Notes: a model not told the origin generated them from the sequence alone. DNA of 64,000 nt from Zancudomyces culisetae HAW-14-8 (GCA_052426225.1 JBNJNM010000014.1:62001-126000); one strand, 5' to 3'. Shown: positions 12,778-64,000, counted from the first letter of the stretch. Translations and numbers: made by a program.

Positions 12778-13233
12778 ATGGTCAATCTTTTGGTAACAAG
12801 TGCATTCTTACTAGCCTCGGGACTTGCAGCTGGTGCAACCATTCCAAGCATCCAGGTATCCAACACCAATGGATCTACTGAAAATCAAGCCAACCTCTAT
12901 AAACGGCACAGTGGAGGCTGGGGAGGAGGTAGAGGTGGGAGCGGGGGTAGAGGTGGGGGTGGACCCACCATGAATATTCAAATGTACATGACGAGCTACT
13001 ATAGAGATCAAATAAACTCAGTAGTAATACAACCAAATTGTTGTTACAATTTGCCAAATATTGATTCAAGCATTCTTGATGGCGGCAGTCAAGGTGCTGG
13101 TGTAATCACATTTTGCACTGGAAATAACTGCGGGGGGAATTGTGTAAGCAGTTCAAGACAAAACTGGTTATACCCTGGAAATATGCAGTATGACCTTGGA
13201 GGTCGGGCAAACTCAGTATACTGGTCTTTGTAG
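12778..13233 (+). CDS. Small secreted Cys-containing prepro-protein (signal, KR site, Gly linker, putative beta/gamma-crystallin-like domain), 151 aa
   Basis: CAACATG start at 12778; signal MVNLLVTSAFLLASGLAAGA; LYKR Kex2-type site; Gly-rich linker; C-terminal domain aligns with the 29052..29606 product. Confidence 0.85.
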   Translation: MVNLLVTSAFLLASGLAAGATIPSIQVSNTNGSTENQANLYKRHSGGWGGGRGGSGGRGGGGPTMNIQMYMTSYYRDQINSVVIQPNCCYNLPNIDSSILDGGSQGAGVITFCTGNNCGGNCVSSSRQNWLYPGNMQYDLGGRANSVYWSL

Positions 13234-14880
13234 TGAGAAAATATCACGTTTTCTTAAGATAATCGGTTTGATACTCACTTGTCCCAAACCGCTAGTTTTG
13301 ATGATTTTTACACAACATCGGATCTATAAACGGTTTTATATGGATATTTGATATTTTGTTGCTAACGTTTTCAAATATTTATATTAGCTAGTGATATTGT
13401 TGTTGGATTAAGATTCAATTTATTTTATTGTTAGAGTTTTCAAACGAGAAAATAAATAATATAAATTATAAAAACGTGTCAATATGAGCTTGCAACGATT
13501 GTTATAAATAATAGTCTGCAATAGTACATTGAGTAACTTTATACTTAGCACCTTTGTATGCATTTTTATATACATTGGTGTTATTCAGTATAAGACTAAT
13601 TTAAAAAAATATTAGCTCAGATTTTATTGTATCTAATGTGAAAAAACATCCACTTTGTTTGCAAATGTCAACTTATTTTAGTCTCATTTAAATGGTACCT
13701 AAGTAATGTTTGATTGATTCGATAAGTTCTATAGTAGAAAAGTTTGTGACAGAGCCGGTTTTCATTGCATAATATCTTTGATTTGAACACCATTTATTTG
13801 ATTTTAGGATATATTTGTACCTTGTAATTATAAATATCTAGGGGTAATATTCAAAGTTAGCTCTAATGCAGATGAAATCTGAGTGAAGTGAGTTGTACAA
13901 ACCTACTTTTACTAAACAGCGGATATAATGTACGGATTTAGTAATACGTGCACTAATCCAAATTTTTTAGAATACAAGCAAGATGATTAAAGGAGTAAAA
14001 AACTACTGAATTAAAGTAGCTAGCACAGAGTGAGATTTTAGATCATAACATGGAAATTTAGAAAAACCAAATAATCCATATTCGGCCCAAGTTCTATCAT
14101 TTTAAATGCCCTAAACAGCATTTACTATACCAAGCTACAAACATGGTACAATTTTAGATTGTTGAACTAGATCTTATCTTACTATTTCATCTCAATTGCG
14201 GTTGATATTTGGAGAACAGCAATATCGGAGTTTTGACTATCATTCTATGTGTCAAAAAACTAAAATAATCGACACATCTACACTGGTTTAGTATATTGTA
14301 CTTTTGATAGTACAATTCTTTGTTTTTGCACAAAATAATCGGCAATTTGTTTTTTGATTCAGCCAGCATACCGCTACTAGTATATTTTTATGTCAGTATT
14401 TTTTGAAATTTTGCTATTTTGGAAATAGTTCATGTACGTAAATCATGTTAGCCGAATTAGTGCAATTAAAATTATGGGCACAAATGAAAATTACGCAACT
14501 GTTCAAAGTACTTTATATTCTTTTCATGTTGTATCCAGAATATAATAATCTATAACTTAAAGCTGCTTTTACTTGGATCAAATACAGAAAAAACCATTTA
14601 AAGCATCTCAAGTCTAGTGTCGTGTGTATCCCATTGTAGATCGGGATTCAACAATTATAAATAAATATATTATTTACTACATAAAAAATCTACTAAAAAT
14701 ATAACAAAGTCAATCCAGAAATTACATTAATAACAGAAAAATCATAGAATAAAATACTATTAAAAAATATATTTTCAAGTAAATCAGTCTTTGAACATAA
14801 AACAATAAGAAATAAAAATAAGGATGTAAAAACAAAACCACAGGCAAGAATACAGTAAAACAAGAATGGAACATAGGTCA

Positions 14881-15069
14881 ATTAAATATAGCTATTATTA
14901 GTTTTATTGAAATAGTTATGTATAAACAAATGAAGACTCAATGAAGATTCCTAAGCTCTTTTAATAGTTTTAAGAAGAAAAGAACAAAAAGTTAATTAAA
15001 TAGTAATTAGGAAATAAAATCCAGGTTTATGATACATAACAAGTTTATTTGGAATAGTGCTACGGCTAG
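14881..15069 (+). repeat. Diverged ~190-bp direct repeat, copy 1 (upstream region of the 82-aa ORF)
   Basis: Shares blocks ATTAAATATAGCTATT, AGACTCA, GATTC..AGCTCTTT, AAGAAAAGAA and AAGTTTATTTGGAATAGTG.TACGGCTAG, in the same order, with 19685..19868. Confidence 0.85.
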
Positions 15070-15125
15070 TTAAAGAATATTTAGTGTTTAAATAAATACA
15101 AAGACTATAAAATCTCAAACTCAAC

Positions 15126-15374
15126 ATGTCAGGCTTCATGAATAAACTCAAAAAAGCATCGATCCAGACCGCTAAAACTCAGGGCCGATACTCATCTGAT
15201 AGTAATCATTTGGGAGCAACTTCTATAGAAGTCGATCCTGAAGAATTACGCGACTCCTTAGCGGATATCATGGAACATAAGTTTTTACAAATGAAGAACC
15301 CGAAAAAGAACGAGATGTCACCCAACCTCATTCGACGCTTGGCTAAATTAAAAAACAGTATATTTGTCATCTAA
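15126..15374 (+). CDS. Small orphan protein, 82 aa
   Basis: CAACATG context, ORF kept open in both arms, and a clear diverged paralogue at 19869..20093 (shared QGRYSS motif). Confidence 0.6.
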   Translation: MSGFMNKLKKASIQTAKTQGRYSSDSNHLGATSIEVDPEELRDSLADIMEHKFLQMKNPKKNEMSPNLIRRLAKLKNSIFVI

Positions 15375-17214
15375 TCAACAAGTTTTATTTCAAATGTTGG
15401 CTAATAATTATTCTTTTATTGAATGACTCCCCTAAACAAGTACGTAACTTAAACTGTAGAAGGTGGTAAACCTGAATTTAACAAACATGTGATCTTACAA
15501 GAATAGGAACCACTATCATGATTTTGTTTTTAGATACAAAAATTAAATTAACCTTTATACTTACTCTTATAATTTATAATACTATGAGCGGACCCATCTT
15601 CATATCTTGCAACGAGAGTTATGAATGATGATCCATGCAAGGTATTAAATGTTGAATCAATGGATTTAATCATTTTCTAAATATAAGACAGAGTTACAGT
15701 AAACCCTAGGCTAAATTACATCATACCCAGTGGGGAATAATCAAGCGCAGAGCTTTTAGGATCGTTACTGTAAATTCAATTTTGTATTCTCATTTGAATG
15801 CGAGGTAGTGACAGAATCGTTAAAAATTTGAAGAGTTTGGAAATGAGTTATAGCAAAAAGAATAATAATTTTATCAATGATAATAGTACAGATACTCACA
15901 CAACTTTGACTCATACTCACATTTGTCACCAGAAGCATTATACTACTTTATTTATGCTGCTACTTTTATTGACAATGATACGGTTTCTGTTCCCAGTTTT
16001 AAAATATTTGCTATTTCTTAGTGAACTTTTAGACAATTAATTTTGTCTAACTTTAAAATAATATTATTTTATTTGGGATGAGAATTATGAGCCTTGTCTA
16101 CAACGAATCCAAATGACTGTAACGGGAAAATTCAGTCTTATCCACAATAACAAACAAAAATAGCGGTGGGGAAAAACGATAAATGATATACAATCTTCCC
16201 TAAAAATTTTCTTCGATATCTAAGGCTTTGCGGCTGTTAAAAAATACCGCATAATAGTACTATTTTGGGAACACGTAAACTCGTGATTTCTATTGTTATT
16301 CAATTCAAAATTACATTTTAATCATTTTGTGAGATTCACCAGACCAAAATAATAGCAATTTTTATGGAATATGTGTGACTTCATTTTTGTTAGTTCGGGG
16401 GATATTTAATGTGAAGCAATCGACAATCATCAATTATTGTTAAATCTGGACCTGCACTATGTTGATTATGCAACTTGGTCCGTATTTTGAATAAATGTGT
16501 ATAACTACCATAATCAAAATACAAGTATAATCATGTGTAATTTTTCTCTAGTATAGAAAAAGTAACACATAAATAAAAGATTGAATCAAATGACATTAAA
16601 GTTCATTAAAAACACACTCGTATGGAACCCCTTATGGACAAAAAATTAAAAATTATACTCCTTAAATCTCAGTTCACTTATCATTAAACGTCCAAACTTG
16701 ATTATCATCAAGTTGTAAGCTTAGTTGTACAAATCAGTGATTGTCAACTCAGCTGTTGCTTTTGTGCATTTTTGAATCAGATAGAATATATTATGTGTGA
16801 TTAAGACATTAAAAAACAAATAGACGGTTTCGTACCAGATCTCAAGGTGGAAATTTAATCCCACTAAGCTGTTAACATAATACAGCATGATAATCTAGAG
16901 AAACAAACGTCTACATATATACAAGTAATACTATTGTGAGTGATACGTAACTTTTATTCTGATCATGAGGAAACTAAATAGAGTTATAGACACTGCATCT
17001 TTCTAGTTTTAAAACGGTTAATCATAAAGGATGTAGTACCTGAATGCGATATTTAAAAAAAAAGTATAAATACCCGCATCTCCAGCTCCTCGTTGATAGT
17101 AAAAACACCTACATCTGCTTTATAAAGCTAAAAAGAGTGTAACACAGTCTATTATTGTATTCTTAACCTTTGTACAAACAAATTTAACGAGTATAATACA
17201 AAAAACTAAAGAAA

Positions 17215-17973
17215 ATGACAGCGCTTAAGTTGAAAATCGGAAGGCTGGTAATGACCACACTGCTTTACACTGCTTGTGCAAACAGTGTGCATCCAATGGG
17301 TATGGTGAGCGAGGCTCATAACTCTGGTATGCCACTCAAAAAACGTGGATATTCCAGATATAACGACTACAGTGATTTTGATTACAGAAACTATGATTAC
17401 GGCTTTCAGATGCGGCCATCATATGCCGAAAATACAAACTATGGAAACTGGGACAGAGCGGAATATGACATGTATACACCAGTGAGATCACCACTAGCCC
17501 ACATAAAATTTGGTGCCACAACAATTGGTGGTGTAGGTGTAGATGGATACAGATATGGTCACAGAGATCATGGAGGAGATAGTGATAGAGATAGTTACAG
17601 AGACAATTACAGAGATATTGAAAGGTATTATAGAGGAGACGGTTACAGAGATAATGGAAGAGATTATTACAGAGATAATGAAAGAGATGATTACAGAGAT
17701 CATGGAAGAGATAGCTACAGAGACTATGGAAGAGGTGATTACAGGGATGATGGAGAAGATGGTTACAGAGATCATGGAAGAGGTGATTACAGGGATGATC
17801 GAAGGAGCAGTTATAGGGATAATAGAAGAGATGAATACAGAGACAATAGAAGAGATGAATACAGAGACAATAGAAGAGATGAATACAGAGATGATCGAAG
17901 AGTAGGTGGCGACTATCATTTTGCAATGGGCAGACCAAATTACCCAAATCCATTGATGCGTTCGAATGACTAA
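17215..17973 (+). CDS. Secreted Tyr/Arg/Asp/Gly-rich repeat protein, 252 aa
   Basis: AAAATG start, TATAAATA 150 bp upstream, signal-like N-terminus, KKR site, then ~8-aa repeats YRD(H/N/D)(G/R)R(D/G)(D/E) encoded by 24-bp units. Confidence 0.8.
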   Translation: MTALKLKIGRLVMTTLLYTACANSVHPMGMVSEAHNSGMPLKKRGYSRYNDYSDFDYRNYDYGFQMRPSYAENTNYGNWDRAEYDMYTPVRSPLAHIKFGATTIGGVGVDGYRYGHRDHGGDSDRDSYRDNYRDIERYYRGDGYRDNGRDYYRDNERDDYRDHGRDSYRDYGRGDYRDDGEDGYRDHGRGDYRDDRRSSYRDNRRDEYRDNRRDEYRDNRRDEYRDDRRVGGDYHFAMGRPNYPNPLMRSND

Positions 17974-18567
17974 GCCATACATAGATTATTCTTGGTGCTG
18001 TACCAACATATAAAATGGTGTTATTTGTACACGTTTCATTTTGCGCAAACAATCAAAAAATAATTGATTCCGATAATCAGCTTTCGTACTCCTGATTTTT
18101 CTGGTTTCTCAATACCCCATCTGCTACATTTTCTCATTCATCGATTGGGAGTACGTATATTCTCCAAAACCACCATACACTAAAGCTATGTGTCATATCA
18201 TGTACTTCAGCTATTTCAAACTCGAAACTCTCTGAATGTTTTAACAATACACAATGCTGTTCTAACCCATCATGAAACACTCACAATCTGTATTTTGTAA
18301 ATAAGAATATTTTATTTTATTTCTGATTTTTGTTTTGAATTGGATCCGTTTTACGAGCAAATGTTGCTAACACCCTTGTGTTTTTGATCTCTCGACGTTA
18401 GGACTTTTTTCAAAGTATACCGTTTACTAGCGTCGTTTTGTGTAAGGATTAAATATATTTTGTACTATTTGTTTTGTTGAATTGTTTACTAGGTTTAAAC
18501 CATCAATCACCATTGACGACCACTGGCACTCCAAGACAGTTTAATGCAGTCTAAAGTTAACTCAAAT

Positions 18568-18852
18568 TCAAGGCAGGGGATCATTCTGTTGATCTGAGGA
18601 GGTAGTAGATGTGAATCCATCTATTTTCACAACATCTGGGATTTCAATTCAAGAATTTTAGTTGGCCCGGTTATTGTAAATGTGCTTAAGTCTATTTTGA
18701 TGACAGGTACTTTAAAATTTGAGATTATAGTACCAGAAACATCCATATCATCAGCTGTAAAGCCTGGAATTGTTTTAGTTTGATCTGCGGCTTTTCTGCG
18801 GAATAGCCTTGCTGCTTCTCTTTTGTGGGGCTTTTCAACTTGCGAATTTCAT
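18568..18852 (-). pseudogene. Probable relic of a secreted-protein gene (arm B copy 58193..58478 on +)
   Basis: AAAAATG AAA TTC GCA AGT TGA with TATAAAA ~130 bp upstream. It is followed in another frame by 93 open codons in arm B (HKREAARLFRRKAANQTKTIPGFT...KIPDVVKIDGFT), frameshifted by 1 bp in arm A. Confidence 0.35.
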
Positions 18853-19684
18853 TTTTTCCTTTATCTTTAGCCGATAATAAAGAGTTTATGAATGCAAAGG
18901 ATAAATATCTGTTAAATTCGTTTATCTTTATTATTGTTTTTCTGAACTATTACTAAAATGGGAATATGGTGTGGGTTTTTATAAATGTGTATTTTTCTTG
19001 AGTATGTTTTTTTTTCATCTCATTAAATTCTCTTATATAGAGCTTTTGGAACTATAACTCACTATACATAACTTATTTACATTACTTTCAGGTGGGCTTT
19101 TATTGTTTTTTGCTATTTGATACTCGGCATCAGTAACCCAAATCGATATGTTACCTCTTGGTATAATTTTTTTGATTCTTTTTAAAGAACTATCAACTAT
19201 ATTTCTCAGCTATTTTTTTAATGCTATAGCAGTTTAATCGTAATTAAATAGACACTTTCGGTTTTATAAAGAGCTTTTTTTCAAGCTTTTTACTTATTTT
19301 GCATATATCTACACATAACTGCTTAACTGAGTACTCACACTAAAACAATGGTTTGTTTTGATTTATTTTGTCGTGTGTACCTGGTTGTTGTGCGGAACAT
19401 AAAGTAATTAATTAATAATTTATTACTATAATATCAATCTAGAGCTCAATTTGAACACAACATTAATAACAGATTCAATTATAAAGTTTTATCAAAAATT
19501 ATATCATAAAAACTAGAATAATGAGTAATAAAATAAAAAAGATAAGATTTATTAATTAGTATATTAATTGTTTAATATAAAAACTGAATTGAAATGGACT
19601 AAAGGAAATGAACTTTGGAAGAAGGAATGAAATTTCAGAGTCGCAAGTTAAGAATATAGTAAAACTATAATACCACATGCATTG

Positions 19685-19868
19685 ATTAAATATAGCTATT
19701 GTTAGATTGTTTAAATAGAATTATTAAAAATTAAGGCAGACTCATAAAAGGATTCTTTAGCTCTTTAAATAGCATTAATAAGAAAAGAAATAAGATAGAT
19801 AAAGAATAATTGTAAACAAAGTTTAACTTTGAAATGTTTAAGTTTATTTGGAATAGTGATACGGCTAG
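19685..19868 (+). repeat. Diverged ~190-bp direct repeat, copy 2 (orphaned upstream region of the inverted paralogue)
   Basis: Collinear similarity to 14881..15069, ending at TACGGCTAG. Confidence 0.85.
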
Positions 19869-20093
19869 CTAATTTTCGGACGCGACCAGACGGTTCACGC
19901 TCCTTAGTCGGTTTCCCGTAGTTAGAAACTCTTGCTGAACTATATCTCCTAGTTAAGCCAATGGGTCATGTGACGGCTCAAGTTCAATATCTATCGAAGA
20001 CACACCTGAACAGTCACTTTTAGAAGAATAACGACCCTGACCCTTAAACCTTTGGATAATAGCTGAGCGGAGTTGATTAATAAGACCTGGCAT
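19869..20093 (-). pseudogene. Inverted, disrupted paralogue of the 82-aa orphan
   Basis: ATG at 20093 gives MPGLINQLRSAIIQRFKGQGRYSSKSDCSGVSSIDIELEPSHDPLA*LGDIVQQEFL, matching MSGFMNKLKKASIQTAKTQGRYSSDSNHLGATSIEVDPEELRDSLADIMEHKFL. Confidence 0.8.
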
Positions 20094-20768
20094 TGTGATT
20101 TTAGTAATTCAAAACTGTCCTTAGCACTATTTTTTAACTTAATTATTAAATAAAAATTATTTCTAACAAACTCCTTGTTCAATCTTATTTATTTTCTAGT
20201 CTTTTTGTATATTCCAAAACTACAAAAAGAGTAGCTGAGACTTCTAATGATATCTCTTCTGCCTTTAAATATGTTAATTACTACTGTTAAAACTATTGTA
20301 AAACTTGTCTAATTAACATTTATTATACCCGTTATCGTTTCATACTCGACCTTATCGTCATACTCATATTCTGTCGTATTTTCCATAATCGATTAAATTC
20401 TTTTACTGTTCTTATTTCAATTTGTAATTTTTCTCTTTAATTTTTGATCTGAATATTTCCTTCAATACGTGATCGAATATTTGAACCGTACTTTTGATTG
20501 TTAATATACTAAATAAAATAAATTTTTTTTGAATATCATAGTTTCCCAAGTAAATGCATTAATTGGGTCTTTTACCCAAAGCACACGACAGAGAAAGCTT
20601 GGAATTGAATCCTCAAAGGGAAATAACGAAGAATTGAACGCTAGTTCAGCGAGAAAGGGTGGTCGCGTTAAGTAGTGTTCAATGAGTAAAGCCAAGTTTT
20701 TAGTCCGGAAAGAGTTAATAAACTAAAGTGATAAATGAAGGATACTATGTTCAACTTTTAATAGATAT

Positions 20769-21630
20769 ATGAAAAAATATGAACAAGCGAAACATAATCG
20801 CGAGCTAAAAAAGCAAGGGGTTCCAGTTAGTTCTGTTTCACAGCTTAGAAAACATATGAGAGCAGCCACAAATACAGAAAAGGTACACAACGTAACTGAA
20901 ATGATAAAGAAAATCCGAAAGAAAAAGGTAGTCAAAACTGAAGACGGATTATTAGAGATAGGTTTGAGTATTTCCAGTTTGCAAGAGTTGTGTGTTAGAG
21001 TAATCAGAAAACATATAAAAGTTTTCACTTCGTTTGGAGATATCTCCTCAGAGGCCAATAACAAAGCGTGTAGGATTATTAATGAATATAGGCCTTTGGA
21101 TAAAAACACACTTCAGCTCTTTTTAACACCAACGTTGGATCAAAAAACAGAACTCGTGTTGTATGAATGTCCAAATATAAATATGAATAATTATTGCAAT
21201 TTTTTTGTTCTGTTGATGGAAAACCAATCAAGCGGGTTTTCACTAATTCATTTGGATTTGGGTGGAGTTTACGATCTTGGTGACAATGCTTTAATTTTCA
21301 TTCTCAGACATTCTGGCTCTACTCTACAGCACTTGAGTCTACACTCATAAGACCAATTCTGATCAAAAAATGACCGTCTTGCCTTTTCTGGTACTATTAT
21401 TTTCAATATATATAAGGATAATAATAGCAATAAAGATAAAGATAGCACAGGTACAAACACCTCTCAATTTACAACGCATTCGACAGTTACTCTTTCGACA
21501 TGCAAAACCCTACATACACTAAAAATTTAATTTTTAAGGTTTATTGATGACCCTATCATCTCCACTCTTCTCTTTAATCATCCCGGCTTATCTACGATAT
21601 ATGTGAATGGGAAACCCGAAGTTCACCTCA
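20769..21630 (+). pseudogene. RAD7: RAD7/Rhp7-like leucine-rich-repeat NER gene remnant
   Basis: SLQELCVRVIRKHI..FTSFGDIS....KACRII...R.L...TLQLFL.P....ELVLYEC is the Rad7 family pattern. Most central LRRs are missing and there is a stop at 21350. Further LRR-like remnants with stops follow (LHTLKI*FLRFIDDPIISTLL). Remnants probably extend upstream of 20769. Confidence 0.7.
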
Positions 21631-23072
21631 CCAGCTTCCGCGTGATCATAATTCTAAGTTATTGGCTGCGAATCTTATGCACTTTGGTTAAGATTTATTA
21701 TTCTTCGCATTAGCTCGGCCATATGTTTATTCGCGCTATACCATATTTGGTGAATTTGTAAAACTTTTCTTTTGTTCATTTAATGTACGTACTACTTATA
21801 TCAAAATCTATAAGCACTATTTTGTTCTCTGGAGAAACTTCCGTAAAAACCTCGCAAACTTATCTACTGTGGGAATACCAGTATTTATGGATATCTCGGT
21901 GGGTTCAAATTAATAACCAGTTGTCACGGACTTTAAACACCGGAAGAAATGTCAAAATTATTTTTTGTATTAGACTGGTAGATTATGTAATTATTTATAA
22001 GCCATGTAAAAAATTCCCCACTATTGAAAAAAGACCATTTAGTTGGGGTTTTTTTTTGAGTCAAGTCAAATGACTTATCTAGCGGATTATTGGATCAACG
22101 AGCCTTGCATCAAATGTGTTTTAATATTAACACCGATTTATCAGTCAGGGTCTACACATAGCAATGGATTTAGAATTAAAAAAGACCACCTACTCTGTTT
22201 CAAATATATTTGTTAATATTGCAAATAGTTTATTACAACGACACTTAGTAAAGCGTTGCGGACAATAAAATAATGTGCAGATTCTATATTGTGTAACAAA
22301 TATTATATATAGCCCCATCCAAAAGCTCCAAATATGTTTAAAATACCAAATATTAGCAATGTACTATTAATAAATGTAAAAACGAGGCTGTACCCAAGTG
22401 TAATTGAAAATAGTCTTGAATAAAATAAGCAGTAGTTGTCATGTTTACAAATAATTGTGGCTATTTAGTTTAACGACTGATAGCAAAATCTGTTTACCAA
22501 AAGACCAGATTGTGCCACCAACATTAAGGATTGACAGGAAAAGTGAATAGGACTTTGTTCCTGGTTAGATATCGCAAATTTTTCCAGGTAGATGTGCGTA
22601 AATATCAATTACTTTAAACTGTTGTATAATATTCATTTTTGAAGTTATATCAATATAATGCTAATTGAAACCAGAACAGCCAAATGTGAACATTAAATTG
22701 GATAAATCTTAATCCATCTATATACACGCAAAAAGAGTTGCAGTACAGCCTCCCACTTTACTATCTTGATACCTCTTTTTATATTTCGAATCAACTTAAG
22801 GGATAATGTATCTGTGTATTCACTATTATAATAGGTTTTTTTATTGTCCAGTTTATTAGCAAAATCTATCGAACTTAACACCCCCTTCCCTCCCCCCAAA
22901 AAATATTAAATTTTAATAGCTGTTTTTACTATAAATCTAAAAATAGAAAACATGAAGGATGTCGGAAGTAGAAATTAATATTTATGAATATTGACATGTT
23001 GTATCATAATATAATGAGCATAAAGCGGTTTTAATGTCAAAAATATAGATCAAAATAAGATGTGACAAAATG

Positions 23073-23080
23073 TATATAAG
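23073..23080 (+). promoter_or_regulatory. Probable TATA box of the 493-aa secreted gene
   Basis: TATATAAG 122 bp upstream of ATG 23195. Confidence 0.45.
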
Positions 23081-23194
23081 TCAACACTATCTACCAAGTT
23101 CCACATTTATAATTACAACTATACTTTATAGTCATCAGTACACATATCTACAAACAAGAGCATTTATACACTTCAAAAAAGGCATTCGAGAAAA

Positions 23195-24676
23195 ATGAGA
23201 CCAAACGCATATGCAGCATTATTTCCGTTGGTTTTGGCTAACTTCATTTTACCAATAGTAGGAGCACCCACTTCAATTGACACTGGGAGTTTTCACTGTT
23301 CTGGGTTTATCAGTAAAATTGACATTGTACAAGGGTCTGGAAATAGTCCAGTTATCAGCTATGGTTGGGATAGAGCTATTGATATTTCTTGCCCATCACA
23401 AGATTACATTGTTTCATTTGATGCTGATCAAACTTCTGATATATATTTTGCAATCAGTGCGGAAAAAGCTTTGAGTACTAGTAGAGGTGTGATTGAAGGT
23501 GTATTTGGTGTAAACAATGGATCATGGTATATTGGGACTTCAAAATATACATTGCTGATGGGCATCAATTCAGGAGCAGCAAATACACAAAAATTATATG
23601 TTCAGGTTAATAGCTCAGGTATCAGCATTGGATTTGTAGGAAACAATACACCAATCTTGACATTGCCAACACGTGATTACAGTGTCAGCACATTTATAAA
23701 CTCATCAAGTACATGGCTTGCGTTTGGAGCCGAGAAGGATTCAACAAAGATCCAAAACATTGAATATAAATGTAATGATTCTAACTGTAAACATTCATCT
23801 TCTACTACATCAGCCAAACCAACCACATCACTTTGCCCAACCACATCAACTAAACCAACTAAACCAACTAAACCAACTAAACCAACTAAACCAACTAAAT
23901 CAACTACTTCAACCACTTCAACCACCTCAACCACTTCAATCAAGCCAACTACTTCAACTACTTCAACTACTTCAACCACCTCAACCACTTCAATCAAGCC
24001 AACTACTTCAACTACTTCAATCAAGCCAACTACTTCAACCACCTCAATCAAGCCAACCACCTCAACTACTTCAATCAAGCCAACCACCTCAACCACCTCA
24101 ATCAAGCCAACCACCTCAACTACTTCAACAAAACCAACCACTTCAACCACCTCAACTACTTCAACCACTTCAACCAAACCAACAACTTCAACCTCTTCAA
24201 TCTGTGACTCCACTTCTGTGGGTCCTGACATTTGTTTATACTCCACTAACAAGAACAAAGATTATGACTTCAAGCAAGCCCTTACTATTCCGTGTGATAC
24301 AAACGACTTTGAGTTCACTGCTAGTGTCTCAGCCACCTCTGACTTCTTTGTTGCTCTCATGGACAGCAGCGGGTATTATAGCTCTAACGGTGTATTAGAA
24401 GCACAATTTGGTTTGTCATCTGGTACCAGTTCCATCAGAAAAGGTAAATACGCCTTAGTCAAGCGCAACAGCGTTCATACAAGAGCCAATTTACAAGACA
24501 TCAAGATTGTTAGCAAAAATTCTCAACTCCAAATCTTCATCAACAGTTTGCTCAAAGTTACACATAGCTTATCTACCTTTAACATGACATCATTGGCTAT
24601 GGCGCCATTCAAAGGCACAGCTTCTGTTTTCAAACCCACTTTCTTTTGCGAGAGAAATTCCCACTGCAAATACTAA
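23195..24676 (+). CDS. Secreted protein with two homologous beta-rich domains separated by a Ser/Thr/Pro mucin-like linker, 493 aa
   Basis: Signal peptide [24 protein letters not shown]. Internal homology: AIDISCPSQDY...TSDIYFAI...GVIEGVFG...KYTL vs [11 protein letters not shown]...TSDFFVAL...GVLEAQFG...KYAL. TKP/TTS/IKP repeats between them. Confidence 0.88.
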   Translation: MRPNAYAALFPLVLANFILPIVGAPTSIDTGSFHCSGFISKIDIVQGSGNSPVISYGWDRAIDISCPSQDYIVSFDADQTSDIYFAISAEKALSTSRGVIEGVFGVNNGSWYIGTSKYTLLMGINSGAANTQKLYVQVNSSGISIGFVGNNTPILTLPTRDYSVSTFINSSSTWLAFGAEKDSTKIQNIEYKCNDSNCKHSSSTTSAKPTTSLCPTTSTKPTKPTKPTKPTKPTKSTTSTTSTTSTTSIKPTTSTTSTTSTTSTTSIKPTTSTTSIKPTTSTTSIKPTTSTTSIKPTTSTTSIKPTTSTTSTKPTTSTTSTTSTTSTKPTTSTSSICDSTSVGPDICLYSTNKNKDYDFKQALTIPCDTNDFEFTASVSATSDFFVALMDSSGYYSSNGVLEAQFGLSSGTSSIRKGKYALVKRNSVHTRANLQDIKIVSKNSQLQIFINSLLKVTHSLSTFNMTSLAMAPFKGTASVFKPTFFCERNSHCKY

Positions 24677-26291
24677 AATATATTTTTAAATCTTTTTATT
24701 ATTTGGTTAGCTTTTAAAAAGGGAATAATAATAAATTTTAGTAAACAAATCAATTAACTTTCTAATAAAGCATATTTGTTTAGTGGTATTTAAAGAAATA
24801 CACCAATCTTTAGAGCAACAAATAATTCATGGTTATGAGAAATGCCGAAATATAGCTGTCAGTGGTATACTACAGTAACGATGCATTCAGCATTTCAAAT
24901 CCAAATCTCAAAACCATTAAAATAAATGAGACTTCATGAGATGGACAATTGAATCTATCTCTTAAATAAGTGTCACAAAATCTGATACTCTACCAGGAAA
25001 AAAGAAATTGCCAAACATTTTATGTTTAGTCAAGCTGCGAACAATGAGATTGTTAGATAGAGTCTGTCAGGCGAGGGTTATTATCTGTATCAATCTTGAG
25101 TATAAAGTATCACTGAAACAACGCCCGGTGGGTAAGGAGTTGCTAGAGAGACAGAGGAGAATTGGTTAGGTTGATATTACATAGAATTGTTTTGTTGTAA
25201 TTTTATTGGGTGCTTATTTATTGGGTCTTATGAACAAAAAAAACACCAAGAAATAATAATTGGGCAAAGTTTACTAGATTGCAGTGGATATGTCAAAAAT
25301 GGCAAAAATGTAATTTCGGGGTTTATAAATCTAAATAGCTTTTTCTTTTAACTAAAACGATTTTCGAACATGGTGAGTTTCGCAGAAAAATCATGGGTAA
25401 ACTCCTGGAGGCAAGAGTTAAACCTTAAACTTTCTGGAATTATTCGGGATACAAACGCCACTTGTGCTAGAGCGGTAGTTTCCACATGCAGGTTTCTCAA
25501 CAAAGCCTTTTTCACTTTGTTACCTAGCTATGAAAGGCAGTAAGTGCAGCCCCACTCCACCTGAACCAATATTTTTCAGGTACCGGGTATCCCAGGGAGT
25601 CGGAATGAAGGTGAGACAAACTTGGTTTAAATGATTGTTTTTTTTACAAACTTTTTGGTATCTAGACAAATATTGCTTGATCAGAAAAGCAATATTTTGT
25701 AAATATACAATAAAATATATAATTGCATTGTGGTTTACAAGCCCCGAAACTCGTATGTAAGCGAATTTACAGTAGCTGCATTGTACTTGTAGTGCTAGAT
25801 CAATTTTTTTCTTTAAATAATGACAATATTTGTTCTCAGTTTTATTCTTTTTTCTGGAATGCTTGTTATCACTTTATTTTACTCATTAACTTTTACAATA
25901 TTCTCACCTTCTACACGAGTTATGCCTCAATTGTGATTTGTCAAATATGTATGTATTCTGCCCCTAGTACGAACAGGTATTTTACAGTTATGTTTAGAAA
26001 TATTAAAAACGATGGCTAGTCGTTATTCAGAAAAATCAAAACGTTCTACATTTTATTACCGCAATAACTCGCCAAGATGGTATTGTAGATTATAAAAAAT
26101 CCCAACCTGAAATCATTCAAACTCAACCCCTTTACAACAACAGTTTAATCCAAATAGAAATAGCTGTAACCATACTTTGTATCTTGATATTCTACAATGC
26201 AGAAAAAAAACTATATAAGAGCTATGATTTTCTTTCACAGTTTATCATACACATCTAACCCTCGCATTAAAAACTACTCGAAAAAACCAAA

Positions 26292-26771
26292 ACTGAACTA
26301 TTAACCCCTTCCCTAGCTGTATTAACACTTTGAGCTGGAACCACCATTGCAAGCCGTAGCGGTGGCCATGAAGACCGCCACGGAGACGGTTGCAAAGGAT
26401 ATAAATACTGAAAAAACGAAAGCTGGTATGATTATTCAGCCGCGTACACAGTGGCAGTATCAGTTGCAGTTTGTGTCGTCAGAGCTGTTGGCACTACTTA
26501 TGAAGTCGGAGCTGGAGCCGTTGCAACAGAATATGCTAGTGGAGCTGTTGGTACTGCATACAAAGCTAGGACCATTGGTAGAGTAGGGGTTGTTGGTGTA
26601 GAAACATATCCACCATACTATTTATCGTTCAATGACTTCTACTTTGATAGATTTGGTAGAAGACACCGAGTATAGCACAAAGGAGAACATCACAAAGATG
26701 ATGGAAGCGGTGGAAGTTGTGGAAGCGGAGGAAGTTATGGTGGTAGCATTTACCTTATCAATGTTGTTTAA
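26292..26771 (+). pseudogene. Pseudogene of a secreted Gly/Ala/Tyr/His-rich protein
   Basis: One frame reads ELLTPSLAVLTL*AGTTIASRSGGHEDRHGDGCKGYKY*KNESWYDY...GAGAVATEYASGAVGTAY...RRHRV*HKGEHHKDDGSGGSCGSGGSYGG. It has a signal-like start without ATG, three in-frame stops and TATATAAG at 26212. Confidence 0.65.
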
Positions 26772-29051
26772 ACTACAATTAATGGTTTTTGCTTTTTTCC
26801 AATCATACGATTGCTTTTTCTTCAAATGTACGAATAAATTCGCACTAATATTAAATATAAGCACTACGAGTTAAAGTGTTATGTATAGGTATTTCGTTTA
26901 GTTGGTTTTTCTACAGCATTTTGTCAACTGTTATAAACTGCACTTCCATCTAAAAAAAATATAGTATTTTTTTTGCTCTGGCCGTTTTAAATGTATTAAT
27001 CTTGAATGTGGTGAGCAAAGTATACAATTTACTGTTCAAAACTATCAACCCGTATCTGTATTACGTAACGAGTAGCCATTACTATCAAATAGCGAGAGTA
27101 AGATATGAGAGTATTATTGATGTGAAAATGTCTATAGACGTATTTGATATTAGTTATTAATCCACTTTTTTCAACCTGTTCCTAAAATAGTTGACTGAAT
27201 CCGTTAATCCATTAATTCAGATATTCATATATATGAGTTGAGTCGTAATAAACATAATTTTGAATAAGGCAAATACTACAATTTTTGTGTAGTTGTCATA
27301 TCTTTTGCATAATGGGTGTGGTGCAGGTTGTTGTAAACTATCTCAATTGTATAGGTGTGATTCTTGTGTATGCTTTATTTTATGAACCTAAAAAAGTATG
27401 TTTATATTGATGTTCTCACGAGCTGATTTATATATTTAAACGTTTCTATCGAGCAGGTGCACTTGACCTCGAAAAAGTTAGATGAATTAACTAAATACAG
27501 AAACCTGGAAAAGTTAGTAGCAGAAAATCTCGATAGTTCAGTTCGAACAGCTACGCATCAATCTCAAAATAACCATATTGGCGTCAAATCAAGAGTATAC
27601 TGTTGTGTGTTGGAGTATAGATACTAGTACTGTTTTTACTTGGTCAAGTTAACTATTTACTGATCAATGTTGCCCAAGTAAATATTTTGGATACTAAAAT
27701 ATGTTTAGCTGGGTAAAGTTAAAACAGTATTGTTATGCAAACACTCAAATACAATTATGTCGTATCTAATTACTGTTCAACCTAGTTCAAAAAATGAAAA
27801 AAAAAACAACAGAAAACATGAGACATCGGTTTGTATACAGTTTTTGAATCTGTCTATCTAGTTTTACCAACCTAGTATTGCCATAGTAAGATGGTTAAAA
27901 AAACGAGTAATCAGTTAAAAATGTTATTAGAAACATAAAGTATTACTCAAATAATTGTATCTGGGTAGGCGAAATTATTGTTAATATTTAATATTGAAAT
28001 AAAAATAAAACTTTCATTAATACTTAAGTTTGCTTGATGCATCCAAACAACTGATACATTCAAAGCTCTTTTATACAGGGTATTGACATCAACATTTCTA
28101 ACATTGTAAAACGAGATCGTGTGATTGTAATTATTGTACGCATTGTCGATCTGGTTAGAATTTTGGACACAAAATTCTATCTTGTATACGGTTTCTCGCA
28201 CAGATCAAGTTAAATCCAAAATCCTTATTTTTTTGTTGCCTGTATTAATCTGGAATTGGAACTTGAATATCAAATATTCTACATGTAAACTCGGTTAGTC
28301 GTAATTAATAAATTGAAACTATTAAATAGTCGGTGATAGGTTCATACAGTGATGCGAGCCCATCAAAACTTATGTTATTTGTATCTGCCTACAAATTTAA
28401 CAAATCAAGTAAAAACCAATAACACCCTTAACACCAACATAGTAATTTACCCTGATTCTCCACCCCACCCCACCCCTTCAAAATGCTCAAAGAATAACTT
28501 CTTGTCTTTGCTAAATCCATCTACTGTGCTTCTTCTAACCATTATCTCTTATCAAGGAGTGGCACCTCAGAAGCTGGGTATCTATGAGTACCAGCTCAAC
28601 AGCGGTCAACTACTTACCCGTATGGTCAAGACTCGATACTAATTCTCATCTAATTTTGACCTGTTTATTAAAGATGTGAGCACAAGTATTCTTGCTGGAT
28701 GTGTTTACTCCTTGTGTGGATAAATTCGGTCCATCCAAGGCTTAACCATCAAACCTTGTTTCTATGATATTTACACTAACTGTGGAACTGAATCTATCAC
28801 AGGTCTATTCTAAATATTATCTAAAAAGTATCAGCTCAAACAGTTTTTTCTAGCTATTTAATATTGAATAGATAGTATATTCGCTTTGCTTTACTTTGTG
28901 CTTTTATTAAATATATTGTGGTCACAATTGGTTGTTAAAATGATTTTATTATAAAATTGCCTCTTCATCTTTTTTAAAAGAATGAAAGTTGAAATAAAAA
29001 TCTATGCAGTTAATGTGCTATTTAATAGGATGAAAATCTAAAACCTAGAAA

Positions 29052-29606
29052 TTAGGTTCTCTTAACCTTGAGCCAAGCGTATGAAACTGCATTTCCTCCA
29101 AGAACATCAGCTACATTGGCGATGGTTTTGGACGATGATCTACGAACCACTTGGCATTTTCCAGTACAATCCTTTGCTGCACAGACCACAATAACACCCT
29201 TTCCTGGCTTGGTCAATCCACTCTTCTTTCCGAGCTTGATTGATGCAAATTCATCGGTGTTGTAGCACTTTCCGCGTCTGACGCTGCGCTTGCTGATTTT
29301 TTGACCAAAGTTGGCAGTCTTGTACAATCTAACACTTGTTCTCTTGGCCTTGCGTCCACCACTGACACGACCACCCATATCATTGAATTCACAACCAGAC
29401 ATATCGTTATTGTACTCATAATCAGCTAGGTAGTTGTCGTATTCAGAATCAGCTAGGTCGTTGTTGTATTCGGAATCGGCAAGATCGTTGTTGTATTCGG
29501 AATCTGCAAGACCATTGTTGTATTCCTTTTGAGTACTGTTGAGGTTCAATGCACTGGTCAAGGCTGAACCGAAAAGCAAGGCGCTGACTAAAGTTGGCTT
29601 GAACAT
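29052..29606 (-). CDS. Secreted prepro-protein: acidic 9-aa repeats, RKAKR site, cationic 4-Cys domain, 184 aa
   Basis: Signal MFKPTLVSALLFGSALTSA; LADSEYNND repeats; basic processing site; mature domain homologous to the 12778..13233 product; TATATAAG on the minus strand at 29731..29738. Confidence 0.9.
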   Translation of the reverse strand: MFKPTLVSALLFGSALTSALNLNSTQKEYNNGLADSEYNNDLADSEYNNDLADSEYDNYLADYEYNNDMSGCEFNDMGGRVSGGRKAKRTSVRLYKTANFGQKISKRSVRRGKCYNTDEFASIKLGKKSGLTKPGKGVIVVCAAKDCTGKCQVVRRSSSKTIANVADVLGGNAVSYAWLKVKRT

Positions 29607-40970: not shown

Positions 40971-41011
<41 letters not shown>

Positions 41012-61666: not shown

Positions 61667-61915
61667 TTAGATGACAAATATACTGTTTTTTAATTTAGCC
61701 AAGCGTCGAATGAGGTTGGGTGACATCTCGTTCTTTTTCGGGTTCTTCATTTGTAAAAACTTATGTTCCATGATATCCGCTAAGGAGTCGCGTAATTCTT
61801 CAGGATCGACTTCTATAGAAGTTGCTCCCAAATGATTACTATCAGATGAGTATCGGCCCTGATTTTTAGCGGTCTGAATCAATGCTGTTTTGAGTTTATT
61901 CATGAAGCCTGACAT
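61667..61915 (-). CDS. Arm B copy of the 82-aa orphan
   Basis: Three amino-acid differences from 15126..15374; ORF intact. Confidence 0.6.
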   Translation of the reverse strand: MSGFMNKLKTALIQTAKNQGRYSSDSNHLGATSIEVDPEELRDSLADIMEHKFLQMKNPKKNEMSPNLIRRLAKLKNSIFVI

Positions 61916-63808
61916 GTTGAGTTTGAGATTTTAATAGTCTTTGTATTTATTTAAACACTAAATATTCTTTAACTAGTCGTAGCACTATTCCAAATAAACT
62001 TGTTATGTATCATAAACCTGGATTTTATTTCCTAATTACTATTTAATTAACTTTTTGTTCTTTTCTTGTTAAAACTATTAAAAGAGCTAAGGAATCTTCA
62101 TTGAGTCTTCATTTGTTTATACATAACTATTTCAATAAAACTAATAATAGCTATATTTAATTGACCTATGTTCCATTCTTGTTTTACTGTGTTCTTGCCT
62201 GTGGTTTTGTTTTTACATCCTTATTTTTATTTCTTATTGTTTTATGTTCAAAGACTGATTTACTTGAAAATAATCTTTTTTAATAGTATTTTATTCTATG
62301 ATTTTTCTGTTATTAAAGTAATTTCTGGATTGACTTTGTTATATTTTTAGTAGATTTTTTATGTAGTAAATAATATATTTATTTATAATTGTTGAATCCC
62401 GATCTACAATGGGATACACACGACACTAGACTTGAAATGCTTTAAATGGTTTTTTCTGTATTTGATCCAAGTAAAAGCAGCTTTAAGTTATAGATTATTA
62501 TATTCTGGATACAACATGAAAAGAATATTAAGTACTTTGAACAGTTGCGTAATTTTCATTTGTGCCTATAATTTTAATTGCACTAATTCGGCTAACATGA
62601 TTTACGTACATGAACTATTTCCAAAATAGCAAAATTTCAAAAAATACTGACATAAAAATATACTAGTAGCGGTATGCTGGCTGAATCAAAAAACAAATTG
62701 CCGATTATTTTGTGCAAAAACAAAGAATTGTACTATCAAAAGTACAATATACTAAACCAGTGTAGATGTGTCGATTATTTTAATTTTTTGACACATAGAA
62801 TGATAGTCAAAACTCCGATATTGCTGTTCTCCAAATATCAACCGCAATTGAGATGAAATAGTAAGATAAGATCTAGTTCAACAATCTAAAATTGTACCAT
62901 GTTTGTAGCTTGGTATAGTAAATGCTGTTTAGGGCATTTAAAATGATAGAACTTGGGCCGAATATGAATTATTTGGTTTTTCTAAATTTCCATGTTATGA
63001 TCTAAAATCTCACTCTGTGCTAGCTACTTTAATTCAGTAGTTTTTTACTCCTTTAATCATCTTGTTTGTATTCTAAAAAATTTGGATTAGTGCACATATT
63101 ACTAAATCCGTACATTATATCCGCTGTTTAGTAAAAGTAGGTTTGTACAACTCACTTCACTCAGATTTCATCTGCATTAGAGCTAACTTTGAATATTACC
63201 CTTAGATATTTATAATTACAAGGTACAAATATATCCTAAAATCAAATAAATGGTGTTCAAATCAACGATATTATGCAATGAAAACCGGCTCTGTCACAAA
63301 CTTTTCTACTATAGAACTTATTGAATCAATCAAACATTACTTAGGTACCATTTAAATGAGACTAAAATAAGTTGACATTTGCAAACAAAGTGGATGTTTT
63401 TTCACATTAGATACAATAAAATCTGAGCTAATATTTTTTAAATTAGTCTTATACTGAATAACACCAATGTATATAAAAATGCATACAAAGGTGCTAAGTA
63501 TAAAGTTACTCGATGTACTATTGCAGACTATTATTTATAAAAATCGTTGCAAGCTCATATTTACACGTTTTTATAATTTATATTATTTATTTTCTCGTTT
63601 GAAAACTCTAACAATAAAATAAATTGAATCTTAATCCAACAACAATATCACTAGCTAATATAAATATTTGAAAACGTTAGCAACAAAATATCAAATATCC
63701 ATATAAAACCGTTTATAGATCCGATGTTGTGTAAAAATCATCAAAACTAGCGGTTTGGGACAAGTGAGTATCAAACCGATTATCTTAAGAAAACGTGATA
63801 TTTTCTCA

Positions 63809-64000
63809 CTACAAAGACCAGTATACTGAGTTTGCCCGACCTCCAAGGTCATACTGCATATTTCCAGGGTATAACCAGTTTTGTCTTGAACTGCTTACAC
63901 AATTCCCCCCGCAGTTATTTCCAGTGCAAAATGTGATTACACCAGCACCTTGACTGCCGCCATCAAGAACGCTTGAATCAATATTTGGCAAATTGTAACA
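63809..64000 (-). CDS. 3' part of arm B copy of the 151-aa secreted Cys protein (5' end outside window)
   Basis: Encodes CYNLPNIDSSVLDGG...GGRANSVYWSL, one I>V change versus 12778..13233. Confidence 0.85.
   Translation of the reverse strand, partial: CYNLPNIDSSVLDGGSQGAGVITFCTGNNCGGNCVSSSRQNWLYPGNMQYDLGGRANSVYWSL

Follow-up and report, generated by a model that had tools for sequence, protein, structure and literature searches.

A probable palindromic segmental duplication of species-specific gene modules on contig 14 of Zancudomyces culisetae

Long inverted duplications are known from several kinds of chromosome. The ampliconic palindromes P1-P8 of the human Y chromosome, reportedly described by Rozen and Skaletsky in 2003, resemble the locus considered here in having long inverted arms, a unique spacer, multi-copy lineage-specific genes, and evidence of non-reciprocal exchange among copies. 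For these Y-chromosome palindromes, maintenance by conversion between the arms has been proposed. In the subtelomeres of fungi and protists, blocks of multigene families propagate through segmental duplication and ectopic conversion. Plastid inverted repeats are said to expand by double-strand-break repair or gene conversion (an account attributed to Goulding and colleagues, 1996), and offer an analogy for the possible origin of the present locus, in that an existing short inverted repeat could be extended outward by copying the neighbour of the other copy. In Candida albicans, long inverted repeats underlie rearrangements and copy-number variation (Todd et al. 2019, cited in Todd & Selmecki 2020, PMC7371428). 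To the extent covered there, these repeats share with the present locus a fungal chromosome, a long gene-containing inverted structure, and the potential to act as substrates for rearrangement and copy-number change; the Z. culisetae palindrome, in contrast, is fixed in one haploid-type assembly, and no rearrangement product is observed.

The locus lies on contig 14 (C14, 637 kb) of Z. culisetae HAW-14-8, a mosquito-gut fungus. The window, that is, the whole stretch of 64,000 nucleotides analysed, corresponds to C14:62001-126000, and positions are counted within it unless the contig is named. The original prediction had paired 13042-30627 with 46404-64000, and this pairing is recovered as inverted blocks of 95-99% complementarity that follow one another colinearly; its sharp inner boundary at 30627/46404 is upheld by base-level alignment. 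The inverted repeat is therefore real; its predicted arm length of 17.6 kb falls short of the true 25.8 kb, and the predicted outer limit at 13042 is the mirror of the window end. The self-comparison with flanking contig that the prediction had called for (self-megablast of 256 kb of contig 14, with a MAFFT alignment of the arms) places the outer ends at C14:66811 and 134228. The left arm covers 4811..30627 (C14:66811-92627; 25,817 bp), the spacer 30628..46403 (15,776 bp), and the right arm 46404-72228 (C14:108404-134228; 25,825 bp), which continues past the window end at 64000. The whole palindrome measures 67.4 kb and lies 66-134 kb from the left end of the contig.

Arm against arm, megablast returns a single alignment of 25,890 columns at 97.66%. 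In the MAFFT alignment 25,267 of 25,913 columns are identical, with 497 mismatches (1.93%) and 32 indels, which amounts to 97.5% identity including gaps. An inverted match of such length and identity cannot arise by chance. As predicted, the differences are scattered SNPs, small indels, and repeat-number changes, such as a 27-bp unit in the gene for a protein of 184 or 193 aa and indels of 22 and 24 bp. Transitions and transversions (333/164) are symmetric between the arms, so there is no RIP-like bias. The outer ends are as sharp as the inner ones, the outermost 500 bp being somewhat more diverged than the rest, and the flanking sequence is unlike on the two sides, with a left flank that, where tested, is single-copy in the genome. 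No second copy of the spacer was found in the 256 kb of contig 14 compared with itself, and its first (left) 2.4 kb, the part searched genome-wide, has no other match in the genome. Long inverted arms of high identity and a non-duplicated spacer between them are two of the features of a palindrome of the Y-chromosome type.

In agreement with the predicted lack of a transposase, neither the arms nor the spacer contain an ORF from a transposable element. The boundaries are less featureless than had been supposed: the inner end of each arm is a dispersed 2.1-kb module (28564..30627 in the left arm), and 8 bp separate the right outer junction from another inverted duplication, the first 350 bp of which resemble the termini of DIRS-like elements. 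This fragment, outside the right outer end, and a 170-bp relic in each arm (27698-27867) are the only traces of transposable elements. A transposon-bounded (composite) duplication was rejected because such elements or their termini are not present at both ends. The palindrome carries no machinery of its own, and it is a known kind of genome structure that calls for no new mechanism. More partial copies of it occur on contig 14, one of them interrupted by a retroelement.

The spacer holds conserved genes, as had been proposed for a palindrome-like amplicon with a unique center. Pfam searches identify MGM101, a multi-exon gene for mitochondrial genome maintenance (31891..32674, + strand; Mgm101p E 4e-50 on the one exon 32336-32674), a PX-domain AGC-type protein kinase (35082..38117, +; Pkinase 2.6e-67, PX 1.3e-5), a cystathionine beta-synthase (38199..39695, -; PALP and CBS domains), a RING-finger membrane protein (41077..41664, -; zf-RING_2 E 2.5e-5, at 24.9 bits under the curated cut-off of 27.3), and a secreted trypsin-like protein (42561..43637, -; Trypsin 9e-23). 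The top full-length matches of the cystathionine beta-synthase are from Smittium (55%) and Coemansia (52%), and the trypsin-like protein has a 43% paralogue at C14:240781-241710 (tblastn). The single-copy left flank carries a Snf7-family gene (2647..3228, -; Pfam Snf7).

Each arm is itself pieced together from modules that belong to species-specific families. As in subtelomeric blocks, the cargo families (4-Cys proteins, a two-gene cassette, and ankyrin genes) occur on many contigs, mostly 17-80 kb from contig ends, in modular and mosaic copies; here, however, the block forms one large palindrome around housekeeping genes. No telomere repeat was found at the left end of contig 14, so a subtelomeric position is not proven. 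The expected doubling of a species-specific gene cluster holds, and most of its genes encode signal-peptide-like N-termini.

Part of the cargo belongs to two families with four invariant cysteines in common. The first is represented by a pre-pro protein of 151 aa, of secreted type, whose C-terminal domain has 4 Cys (12778..13233, +; right-arm copy 63809-64264, -, past the window end); this family counts at least 68 loci across the genome, most of them 17-60 kb away from a contig end. The second is a 184-aa pre-pro protein (29052..29606, -), whose right-arm copy (47414-47995, +) has 193 aa owing to one additional repeat. It carries a signal peptide, 9-aa repeats of acidic character, and a KR site; the mature domain is cationic, contains 4 Cys, and is almost invariant across eight copies in the genome. 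Its AlphaFold model reaches a pLDDT of 70-80 over residues 89-180, and all of the top 50 Foldseek hits in the PDB are beta-gamma-crystallin domains (probability up to 1.00, E 6e-3 to 0.1, TM by target up to 0.64); the Pfam profile of the Crystall family gives no match even at E up to 1. With moderate confidence, both proteins may thus be placed in the beta-gamma-crystallin superfamily, at the level of the fold only. A profile search with the 184-aa protein found only 28 representatives among 1.84 billion, and the ten that were looked up comprise eight from Z. culisetae, one on a contig of strain COL-18-3, and one from Smittium mucronatum.

The 184-aa gene is contained in the 2.1-kb module at the inner arm ends. 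Further copies of this module are found at C14:11314-13406 and 193581-195655 (92-94%) and on C8, C15, C13, C6, and C11 (82-85%). The left- and right-arm copies and copies 3 and 4, all on contig 14, share the same terminal base, and in copies 3 and 4 a repeat-protein module is fused straight to the 2.1-kb module, without the 10-kb cassette. Between the arms the module is twice as diverged as the remainder (3.6% vs 1.78%), an excess that speaks for a modular origin but could equally reflect conversion by copies 3 and 4 or weaker homogenization near the arm edge.

The remaining cargo is more heterogeneous. Both arms contain a decayed, frame-shifted fragment of a cystathionine beta-synthase (5747..6605, +; mirrored at C14:133254-132435), which matches residues 1-286 of the spacer protein at 33-59% identity in several frames (tblastn) and at 70% in DNA. 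Next comes an ankyrin-repeat protein gene of 1172 aa (7436..10954, +; Pfam Ank families). The original prediction had correctly assigned the conserved genes to the spacer and had placed this gene in the left flank, although it belongs to the arm. The left copy is intact, whereas the right one is split into ORFs of 685 and 400 aa by a 1-bp deletion opposite position 9482 that involves no change in homopolymer length. Protein searches recover only Z. culisetae paralogues (41-53% identity), and dozens of DNA matches at 65-70% are present in the genome. A Tyr-Arg-Asp repeat protein of 252 aa (17215..17973, +; right-arm copy 59073-59831, -) has an N-terminus that resembles a signal peptide and no Pfam match; there are four close copies of it, all on contig 14, and about eight distant ones. 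The two-gene cassette, present at no fewer than ten loci, begins with a gene whose main exon encodes 193 aa (20769..21350, +; right-arm copy 55696-56277, -); it is homologous to a 302-aa gene of COL-18-3 and has an 80% DNA match at L041:1544-2581. Finally, a 493-aa secreted-type protein (23195..24676, +; right-arm copy 52370-53851, -), with one Z. culisetae protein (51%) as its sole close homologue, contains two homologous beta-sandwich domains, which share 28% identity (E 2e-10) and are connected through a linker of Thr/Ser/Pro/Lys repeats. Its AlphaFold model (pLDDT 69, pTM 0.71) yields 351 Foldseek hits at E of 1e-3 or below, with galectin and ConA-like lectin folds on top; the best one, the galectin-8 N-domain, has an E of 1.6e-5, yet a TM of only 0.47-0.5 and an rmsd of about 6 A. 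The lectin-like fold of the two domains is a tentative prediction. The earlier label of "effector" is a guess, the predicted folds being beta-gamma-crystallin-like and lectin-like.

The distribution of differences between the copies points to exchange among them. Differences between the arms are over-dispersed (variance/mean 5.4), and identical tracts of at least 300 bp number 12, against 1.0 expected. In the region present in three copies the sister relationship changes tract by tract (runs test p<1e-4). When COL-18-3 (C) is added to the left arm (L), the right arm (R), and the third copy (T), incompatible 2|2 splits appear in clusters (LT|RC 16, LC|RT 8, LR|TC 5), and in a 1-kb tract at 10966-12007 the L-R distance exceeds both L-C and R-C. 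In the regions with four copies, about one third of the L/R differences are common to copies 3 or 4, in short runs. Read from these alignments, the patterns demonstrate tract-wise ectopic gene conversion among the copies. Exchange is most evident in a tract shared by the left arm and the third copy, and events from arm to arm are inseparable from exchange with third copies. Because conversion acts by tracts, the arm divergence is patchy and provides no clean clock.

Strain COL-18-3 is represented by an independent Illumina assembly (GCA_001969505.1), whose relevant contigs were found by means of the Snf7 protein as an anchor. The exact protein is present on two contigs, both of which cross the left outer junction colinearly, and the match of the right arm to these contigs ends exactly at C14:134228. 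The two COL-18-3 versions of the left flank and arm edge agree completely over 6.5 kb, beyond which they differ by 1-2.6%. Divergence between the strains is 1.2% in the flank and 1.7-2.2% in the arm, so that the 1.9% between the arms is about equal to it. Site patterns are nearly star-like (LR|C 56-60, LC|R 41-50, RC|L 36-48; over 6.1 kb, 60, 41, and 48, respectively), and a duplication close to the split of the strains would likewise give a star-like pattern. COL-18-3 has a single annotated copy of the 151-aa gene, and its contig leaves the arm at position 15467; these sequence data suggest that the palindrome may be absent or different in that strain.

The similarity between arm and strain divergence, the star-like patterns, and a runs test of L-only against R-only sites over the same 6.1 kb that is not significant (p = 0.12) would all fit a simple young inverted duplication, altered by independent mutations alone and datable by its divergence. 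This account is nevertheless rather improbable, as it explains neither the strong over-dispersion nor the tract-to-tract changes in the tree of L, R, and the third copy, the presence of all three incompatible splits with COL-18-3, the tract in which L and R are further from each other than from C, or the paralogue-shared variants in short runs. An unlikely but somewhat better candidate is an amplicon under selection for dosage or integrity, in which conversion between the arms keeps two good islands of secreted-protein genes, as the prediction that the locus "maintains two copies" implied. Of the six pairs of cargo ORFs, five have no broken member, exchange among copies does take place, and the 184-aa gene (pS 0.10, pN 0.006), with a mature domain invariant genome-wide, is strongly constrained; judging from these substitutions, it is the only arm gene for which purifying selection is clear. 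Against such maintenance, coding and non-coding sequence diverge equally (1.97% vs 1.91%), which does not support selection to keep both copies. Moreover, the right-arm ankyrin gene is frameshifted, both that gene and the 193-aa exon have a pN/pS close to 1 between the arms, and the 151- and 252-aa genes together show 15 non-synonymous and no synonymous differences (five of them in the 151-aa gene). COL-18-3 does not demonstrably share the palindrome. The arms, at 97.5-98% identity, are also 2% apart, whereas conversion-maintained palindromes such as those of the Y chromosome are reportedly at least 99.9% identical; the broken arm gene, the equal divergence of coding and non-coding sequence, and the amount of demonstrable exchange with third copies outside the palindrome further separate this locus from them.

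A fold-back chimera yields identical arms and no spacer. Such a chimera, or haplotypes or nuclear variants joined head-to-head by the assembler or by FinisherSC, is a very unlikely source of the structure. In its favor stand the post-processing of the assembly with FinisherSC, the two COL-18-3 versions of the left flank and arm edge, which indicate that allelic-like or duplicated variants exist in the species, and the single COL-18-3 copy found of an interior arm gene. The structure, however, has a spacer of 15.8 kb, and its arms are told apart by 497 substitutions and by 32 indels, among them a frameshifting one and a 27-bp repeat unit; a fold-back chimera would not look like this. A haplotype misjoin would require two false joins and duplicated flanks, yet only one copy exists of the left flank and of that part of the spacer which was searched. 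The arms end abruptly on both sides, next to differing neighbors, giving four distinct junctions, and two contigs of the Illumina assembly made independently from COL-18-3 run colinearly across the left outer one. The statistics of the assembly fit those of the PacBio-HiFi assembly of HAW-14-8 made with hifiasm and then FinisherSC (PMC12611240). HiFi reads readily separate copies that are 2% diverged, the assembly, at 27.2 Mb, comes close to the 26.2 Mb estimated from k-mers, and the additional partial copies on contig 14, among them the one interrupted by a retroelement, attest to widespread real duplication in this region. Long inverted homologies are able to invert the DNA between them, and another reading has the arms serve as a programmed flip-flop cassette that inverts the spacer to switch expression. 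This is extremely improbable: Pfam reveals no recombinase or integrase among the ORFs of at least 150 aa in the arms, spacer, and left flank, the other ORFs of at least 100 aa do not cluster with the retroelement ORFs of contig 14, and each arm, with 25.8 kb of ordinary genes, is unlike a short recombination site. The housekeeping genes of the spacer are complete and have flanks of their own, so that turning the spacer around would leave them wired as before, and a second orientation of the spacer was not observed.

The locus is thus probably a genuine palindromic segmental duplication, in which a patchwork of modules was copied and later modified by mutation and ectopic conversion. A single 25.8-kb patchwork would have been placed, as an inverted copy, beyond the 15.8 kb of housekeeping genes, most likely through copying during replication or repair (break-induced replication or template switching). 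Priming may have occurred where the dispersed 2.1-kb module with the 184-aa gene was already present as an older copy in inverted orientation, and copying would have ended through the junction beside the retroelement-terminal fragment. Compared with the plastid inverted repeat, this putative event would concern a nuclear chromosome and a 23.7-kb extension in one step. Point mutations, small indels, and changes in repeat number have since accumulated in the arms, together with tract-wise ectopic conversion, including at least one clear case with a third copy 45 kb away. For the fungus, the outcome is that six or more cargo genes are doubled, one copy of which is already broken, and that two inverted homologies of 25.8 kb could invert the housekeeping genes lying between them.

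A repeat search of the window revealed 16 colinear inverted blocks, 95-99% complementary, which pair positions 13042-30627 with 46404-64000. This chain of blocks agrees with the inverted pairing of the original prediction, made from the sequence alone, but the outer limit of 13042 given there is the mirror of the window edge. Self-comparison including flanking sequence, run on the first 256 kb of the 637,497-bp contig JBNJNM010000014.1 (C14; the genome comprises 27.09 Mb in 25 contigs), located the true outer ends at C14:66811 and 134228. The left and right arms extend over C14:66811-92627 and 134228-108404 (window 4811-30627 and 46404-72228) and enclose a spacer of 15,776 bp, single-copy within these 256 kb and, for its first 2.4 kb, within the genome; the full palindrome measures 67.4 kb. 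Both the inner and the outer boundaries are sharp, and the arm alignment supports the inner boundary first proposed (30627/46404). This global alignment has 25,913 columns, with 25,267 identities, 497 mismatches (1.93%), and 32 indels. The mismatches comprise 333 transitions and 164 transversions; the transitions are symmetric and hence show no RIP-like bias, so RIP-type mutation was ruled out as the source of the differences between the arms.

Such a structure could be suspected to arise from the assembly itself. The genome of strain HAW-14-8 was assembled from PacBio HiFi reads with hifiasm and FinisherSC into 27.2 Mb and 26 contigs, the largest of more than 5.2 Mb, with a k-mer estimate of 26.2 Mb (PMC12611240). 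An artefact is improbable, given that the sequencing technology separates sequences with 2% divergence, and the arms differ at about 1 base in 50, by indels of up to 27 bp, and by a frameshift. Moreover, the four junctions are distinct, the flanks and the spacer are unduplicated, and the same contig holds more partial copies, one of them interrupted by a retroelement. Outside this assembly, two contigs from COL-18-3, the second sequenced strain of Zancudomyces culisetae (Illumina assembly GCA_001969505.1), are colinear across the left outer junction, and the match to the right arm ends exactly at C14:134228. The internal evidence argues for a real palindrome.

The left flank occurs once in the genome. 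From the outside inwards, each arm contains a decayed, frame-shifted cystathionine beta-synthase fragment (window 5747-6605, mirrored at C14:133254-132435), an ankyrin-repeat gene of 1172 aa whose family counts dozens of members, a gene for a 151-aa pre-pro protein with a 4-Cys domain (window 12778-13233), a gene for a 252-aa Tyr-Arg-Asp repeat protein (window 17215-17973), a two-gene cassette found at 10 loci or more and consisting of a 302-aa-type gene and the gene of a 493-aa protein, and a 2.1-kb module with a 184-aa pre-pro 4-Cys gene. The spacer encodes MGM101 (identified from a single exon), a PX-kinase, cystathionine beta-synthase, a RING protein, and a trypsin-like protein. Conserved genes had been placed in both the spacer and the left flank; this holds for the spacer. 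The flank carries a C2-domain gene and a Snf7 gene, and the ankyrin gene lies inside the arm. The reported lack of a transposase was confirmed, as neither arms nor spacer hold any transposable-element ORF; retroelement nests on the contig lie outside them, at C14:22-26, 143-147, 156-185, and 225-229 kb. Scans of the window for tRNAs and Rfam families found nothing, and an exact-sequence look-up of 19 window proteins matched only the Snf7 flank gene. The intact cystathionine beta-synthase gene, near the spacer centre, has its best full-length matches in Smittium (55%) and Coemansia (52%). The fragment in both arms, which covers residues 1-286 at 33-59% identity, is a remnant of a much older duplication.

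Among the cargo of the arms, the 4-Cys family counts at least 68 loci in the genome, mostly 17-60 kb from contig ends, and a profile search of 1.84 billion representatives returned only 28 relatives; among the 10 examined by name, eight are assigned to Z. culisetae, one lies on a COL-18-3 contig, and one belongs to Smittium mucronatum. Eight genome copies of the 184-aa subfamily have a nearly invariant mature domain, although the DNA beside them agrees at only 82-85%; this points to a species-restricted small secreted-type protein under unusually strong constraint. The protein (window 29052-29606 and 47414-47995) has a cationic mature domain and a propeptide in which an acidic 9-aa repeat varies in number, giving lengths of 175-193 aa. 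Its AlphaFold model has a pLDDT of 70-80 over residues 89-180, and the 50 best PDB structure matches are all beta-gamma-crystallin domains. The 493-aa protein consists of two homologous domains, predicted as galectin/ConA-like beta-sandwiches with modest TM. A Thr/Ser/Pro/Lys repeat links the two, and most differences between the two arm copies of the gene fall within it. Searches with this protein and the ankyrin protein found Z. culisetae paralogues (41-53%) as sole homologues and led to no COL-18-3 contig orthologous to the inner junctions or to the right outer one. As a guess, the cargo could act at the interface between fungus and gut, in the manner of a lectin or of an antimicrobial-like peptide. 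On many contigs (C7, C8, C9, C11, C12, C13, C21, C23, and C14 at its right end), members of the 4-Cys family, the two-gene cassette, and relatives of the 184-aa gene lie at similar distances, about 17-80 kb, from the contig start or end, a placement that suggests a common chromosome-end architecture.

The original prediction also proposed that the palindrome maintains two copies of its genes, a claim to which the divergence between the arms lends no support: it is equal in coding (1.97%) and non-coding (1.91%) sequence, and the right-arm ankyrin copy is split into ORFs of 685 and 400 aa by a 1-bp deletion that is not a homopolymer-length change. The ankyrin gene and a 193-aa exon show a pN/pS of about 0.7-0.9, and the 184-aa gene a pS of 0.10 with a pN of 0.006. 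The 151-aa and 252-aa genes together carry 15 non-synonymous and no synonymous differences, where about three synonymous ones would be expected under neutrality (one-sided p of about 0.03, with an uncertain alignment in the repeat region), which hints, if weakly, at diversifying or relaxed selection.

Differences between the arms are strongly clustered (variance/mean of 5.4 in 250-bp bins), and 12 identical tracts of at least 300 bp are observed where 1.0 would be expected. Window 9785-12060 is present in a third copy, located at C14:21200-21872 and 26723-28327. The arms agree against the third copy at 9788-10406 (22 sites), the right arm agrees with it against the left at 10750-10901 (six sites), and the left arm agrees with it against the right at 10966-12007 (29 sites), so that the closest relative changes by tract (runs test, p<1e-4). 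Once the COL-18-3 contig is added, three incompatible and clustered splits appear: left arm with third copy (16 sites), left arm with COL-18-3 (eight), and left with right arm (five). In the 1-kb tract 10966-12007 the arms differ from each other at about 30 sites and from COL-18-3 at about 20 each, a pattern that is impossible for a clock-like tree and is consistent with the left arm having been converted by the third copy, which is older. In regions present in four copies, about one-third of the differences between the arms are common to one of the two further contig-14 copies of the inner module, in short runs. Tract switching, incompatible splits, and short shared runs thus show ectopic exchange among the copies; pure arm-to-arm conversion is plausible.

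The COL-18-3 contigs match contig 14 colinearly at 97-98%. Divergence between the strains is 1.18% in the single-copy flank and 1.7-2.2% in the arm, and over the stretches compared the two arms of HAW-14-8 differ by 1.45-2.0%. Site patterns are nearly star-like (56-60 sites uniting the arms, 41-50 the left arm and COL-18-3, 36-48 the right arm and COL-18-3). From these patterns and the similar divergences, the duplication would therefore be of about the same age as the split of the two sequenced strains. In COL-18-3 the 151-aa gene is annotated in one copy only. Its contig LSSK01001440.1 matches both arms equally (98.1-98.2%), departs at window 15467, and continues (positions 6144-6241) into sequence like C14:149803-149894; either the two strains differ in structure at this point, or the contig end is repeat-induced. 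The left flank and arm edge (C14:55.7-71.1 kb) lie on two contigs, LSSK01000460.1 and LSSK01001077.1, identical over 6.5 kb (C14 ~55.7-62.2 kb) and from there to the arm diverging by 1-2.6%, with indels in addition; this flank, single-copy in HAW-14-8, is either duplicated or heterozygous in COL-18-3. The COL-18-3 contig of protein P0134 was rejected as the palindrome locus, being only a distant paralogue (70-75%).

The arm ends differ in nature. A dispersed module makes up the inner 2.1 kb of each arm, with further copies at C14:11314-13406 and 193581-195655 (92-94%) and on five other contigs (82-85%), and the homology of both arms and both other contig-14 copies stops at the identical base. 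The left outer end is not a repeat within its own genome. Only 8 bp separate the right outer end from another inverted duplication (C14:134236-142118 versus 240564-232679, 98.7%), whose first 350 bp show 70-72% similarity to DIRS-like retroelement termini. These retroelements have a reverse transcriptase, an RNase-H-type domain, a Dam-like methyltransferase, and 210-bp inverted ends. This second duplication measures 7.9 kb, with copies about 90 kb apart, and holds a secreted-type gene of 252 aa together with a 155-aa ORF; adjoining its distal copy is a paralogue (43%) of the spacer trypsin-like gene. Elsewhere on the contig, a 4.85-kb DIRS-type retroelement with 210-bp inverted ends (C14:21873-26722) interrupts a third copy, 96-98% identical, of the 3' region of the ankyrin gene. 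Its 518-aa ORF encodes the same three domains, and the overlapping 1250-aa ORF has no Pfam match. A direct duplication of 8.4 kb (C14:209356-217853 versus 242918-251466, 95-96.6%) carries a 494-aa gene and an ankyrin gene, intact with 1255 aa in one copy and in three ORFs in the other.

As for its origin, the right-hand side of the spacer probably already had a copy of the 2.1-kb module, older and in inverted orientation. Following a break, copying would have been primed inside the module and extended outward over 23.7 kb of the left-hand block, and the copied stretch would have been rejoined beside the retroelement fragment. This proposed model would explain why the module end is shared, why the inner 2.1 kb looks older, and why the outer end is unique on the left and compound on the right. 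The two-fold higher divergence of the module (74/2051, 3.6%, versus 423/23,713, 1.78%, in the rest) could instead come from conversion by the two other contig-14 copies, or from an edge effect. An older and larger palindrome, considered for the mirror placing of those copies (C14:11.3-16.5 and 190.5-195.7 kb), was rejected, as the outer flanks share no other inverted homology.

Taken together, the sequence comparisons favour a palindrome that is real, larger than reported, and ordinary in kind; as a mechanism it is nothing categorically new. It has the architecture of the large palindromic segmental duplications of sex-chromosome amplicons, is alike in kind to the long inverted repeats of Candida albicans (PMC7371428), and shares with subtelomeric gene families a modular, mosaic behaviour. 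In contrast, the arms of palindromes maintained by conversion are far more alike than those found here. Because palindrome regions are mosaic, divergence provides no date for them. None of the papers searched mentions nuclear palindromes in Harpellales.

It is conceivable, if quite unlikely, that Z. culisetae systematically builds and keeps large gene-bearing palindromes which, in a probably clonal gut symbiont, serve as exchange platforms that protect and diversify secreted gut-interaction genes via conversion with dispersed paralogues, and whose spacers might flip within a culture. The near-complete genome of this early-diverging insect-gut fungus holds very large gene-bearing inverted duplications, which short-read drafts are unable to resolve, the COL-18-3 contigs breaking within the arms. 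For annotation and comparison in Harpellales, a practical point is that copy number appears to vary between strains. The palindrome is tied to families that are species-specific, for the most part secreted, and concentrated near chromosome ends, including a large one of small proteins with a predicted beta-gamma-crystallin fold and an unusually strictly conserved mature domain, and these families would be candidates for a role at the fungus-gut interface.
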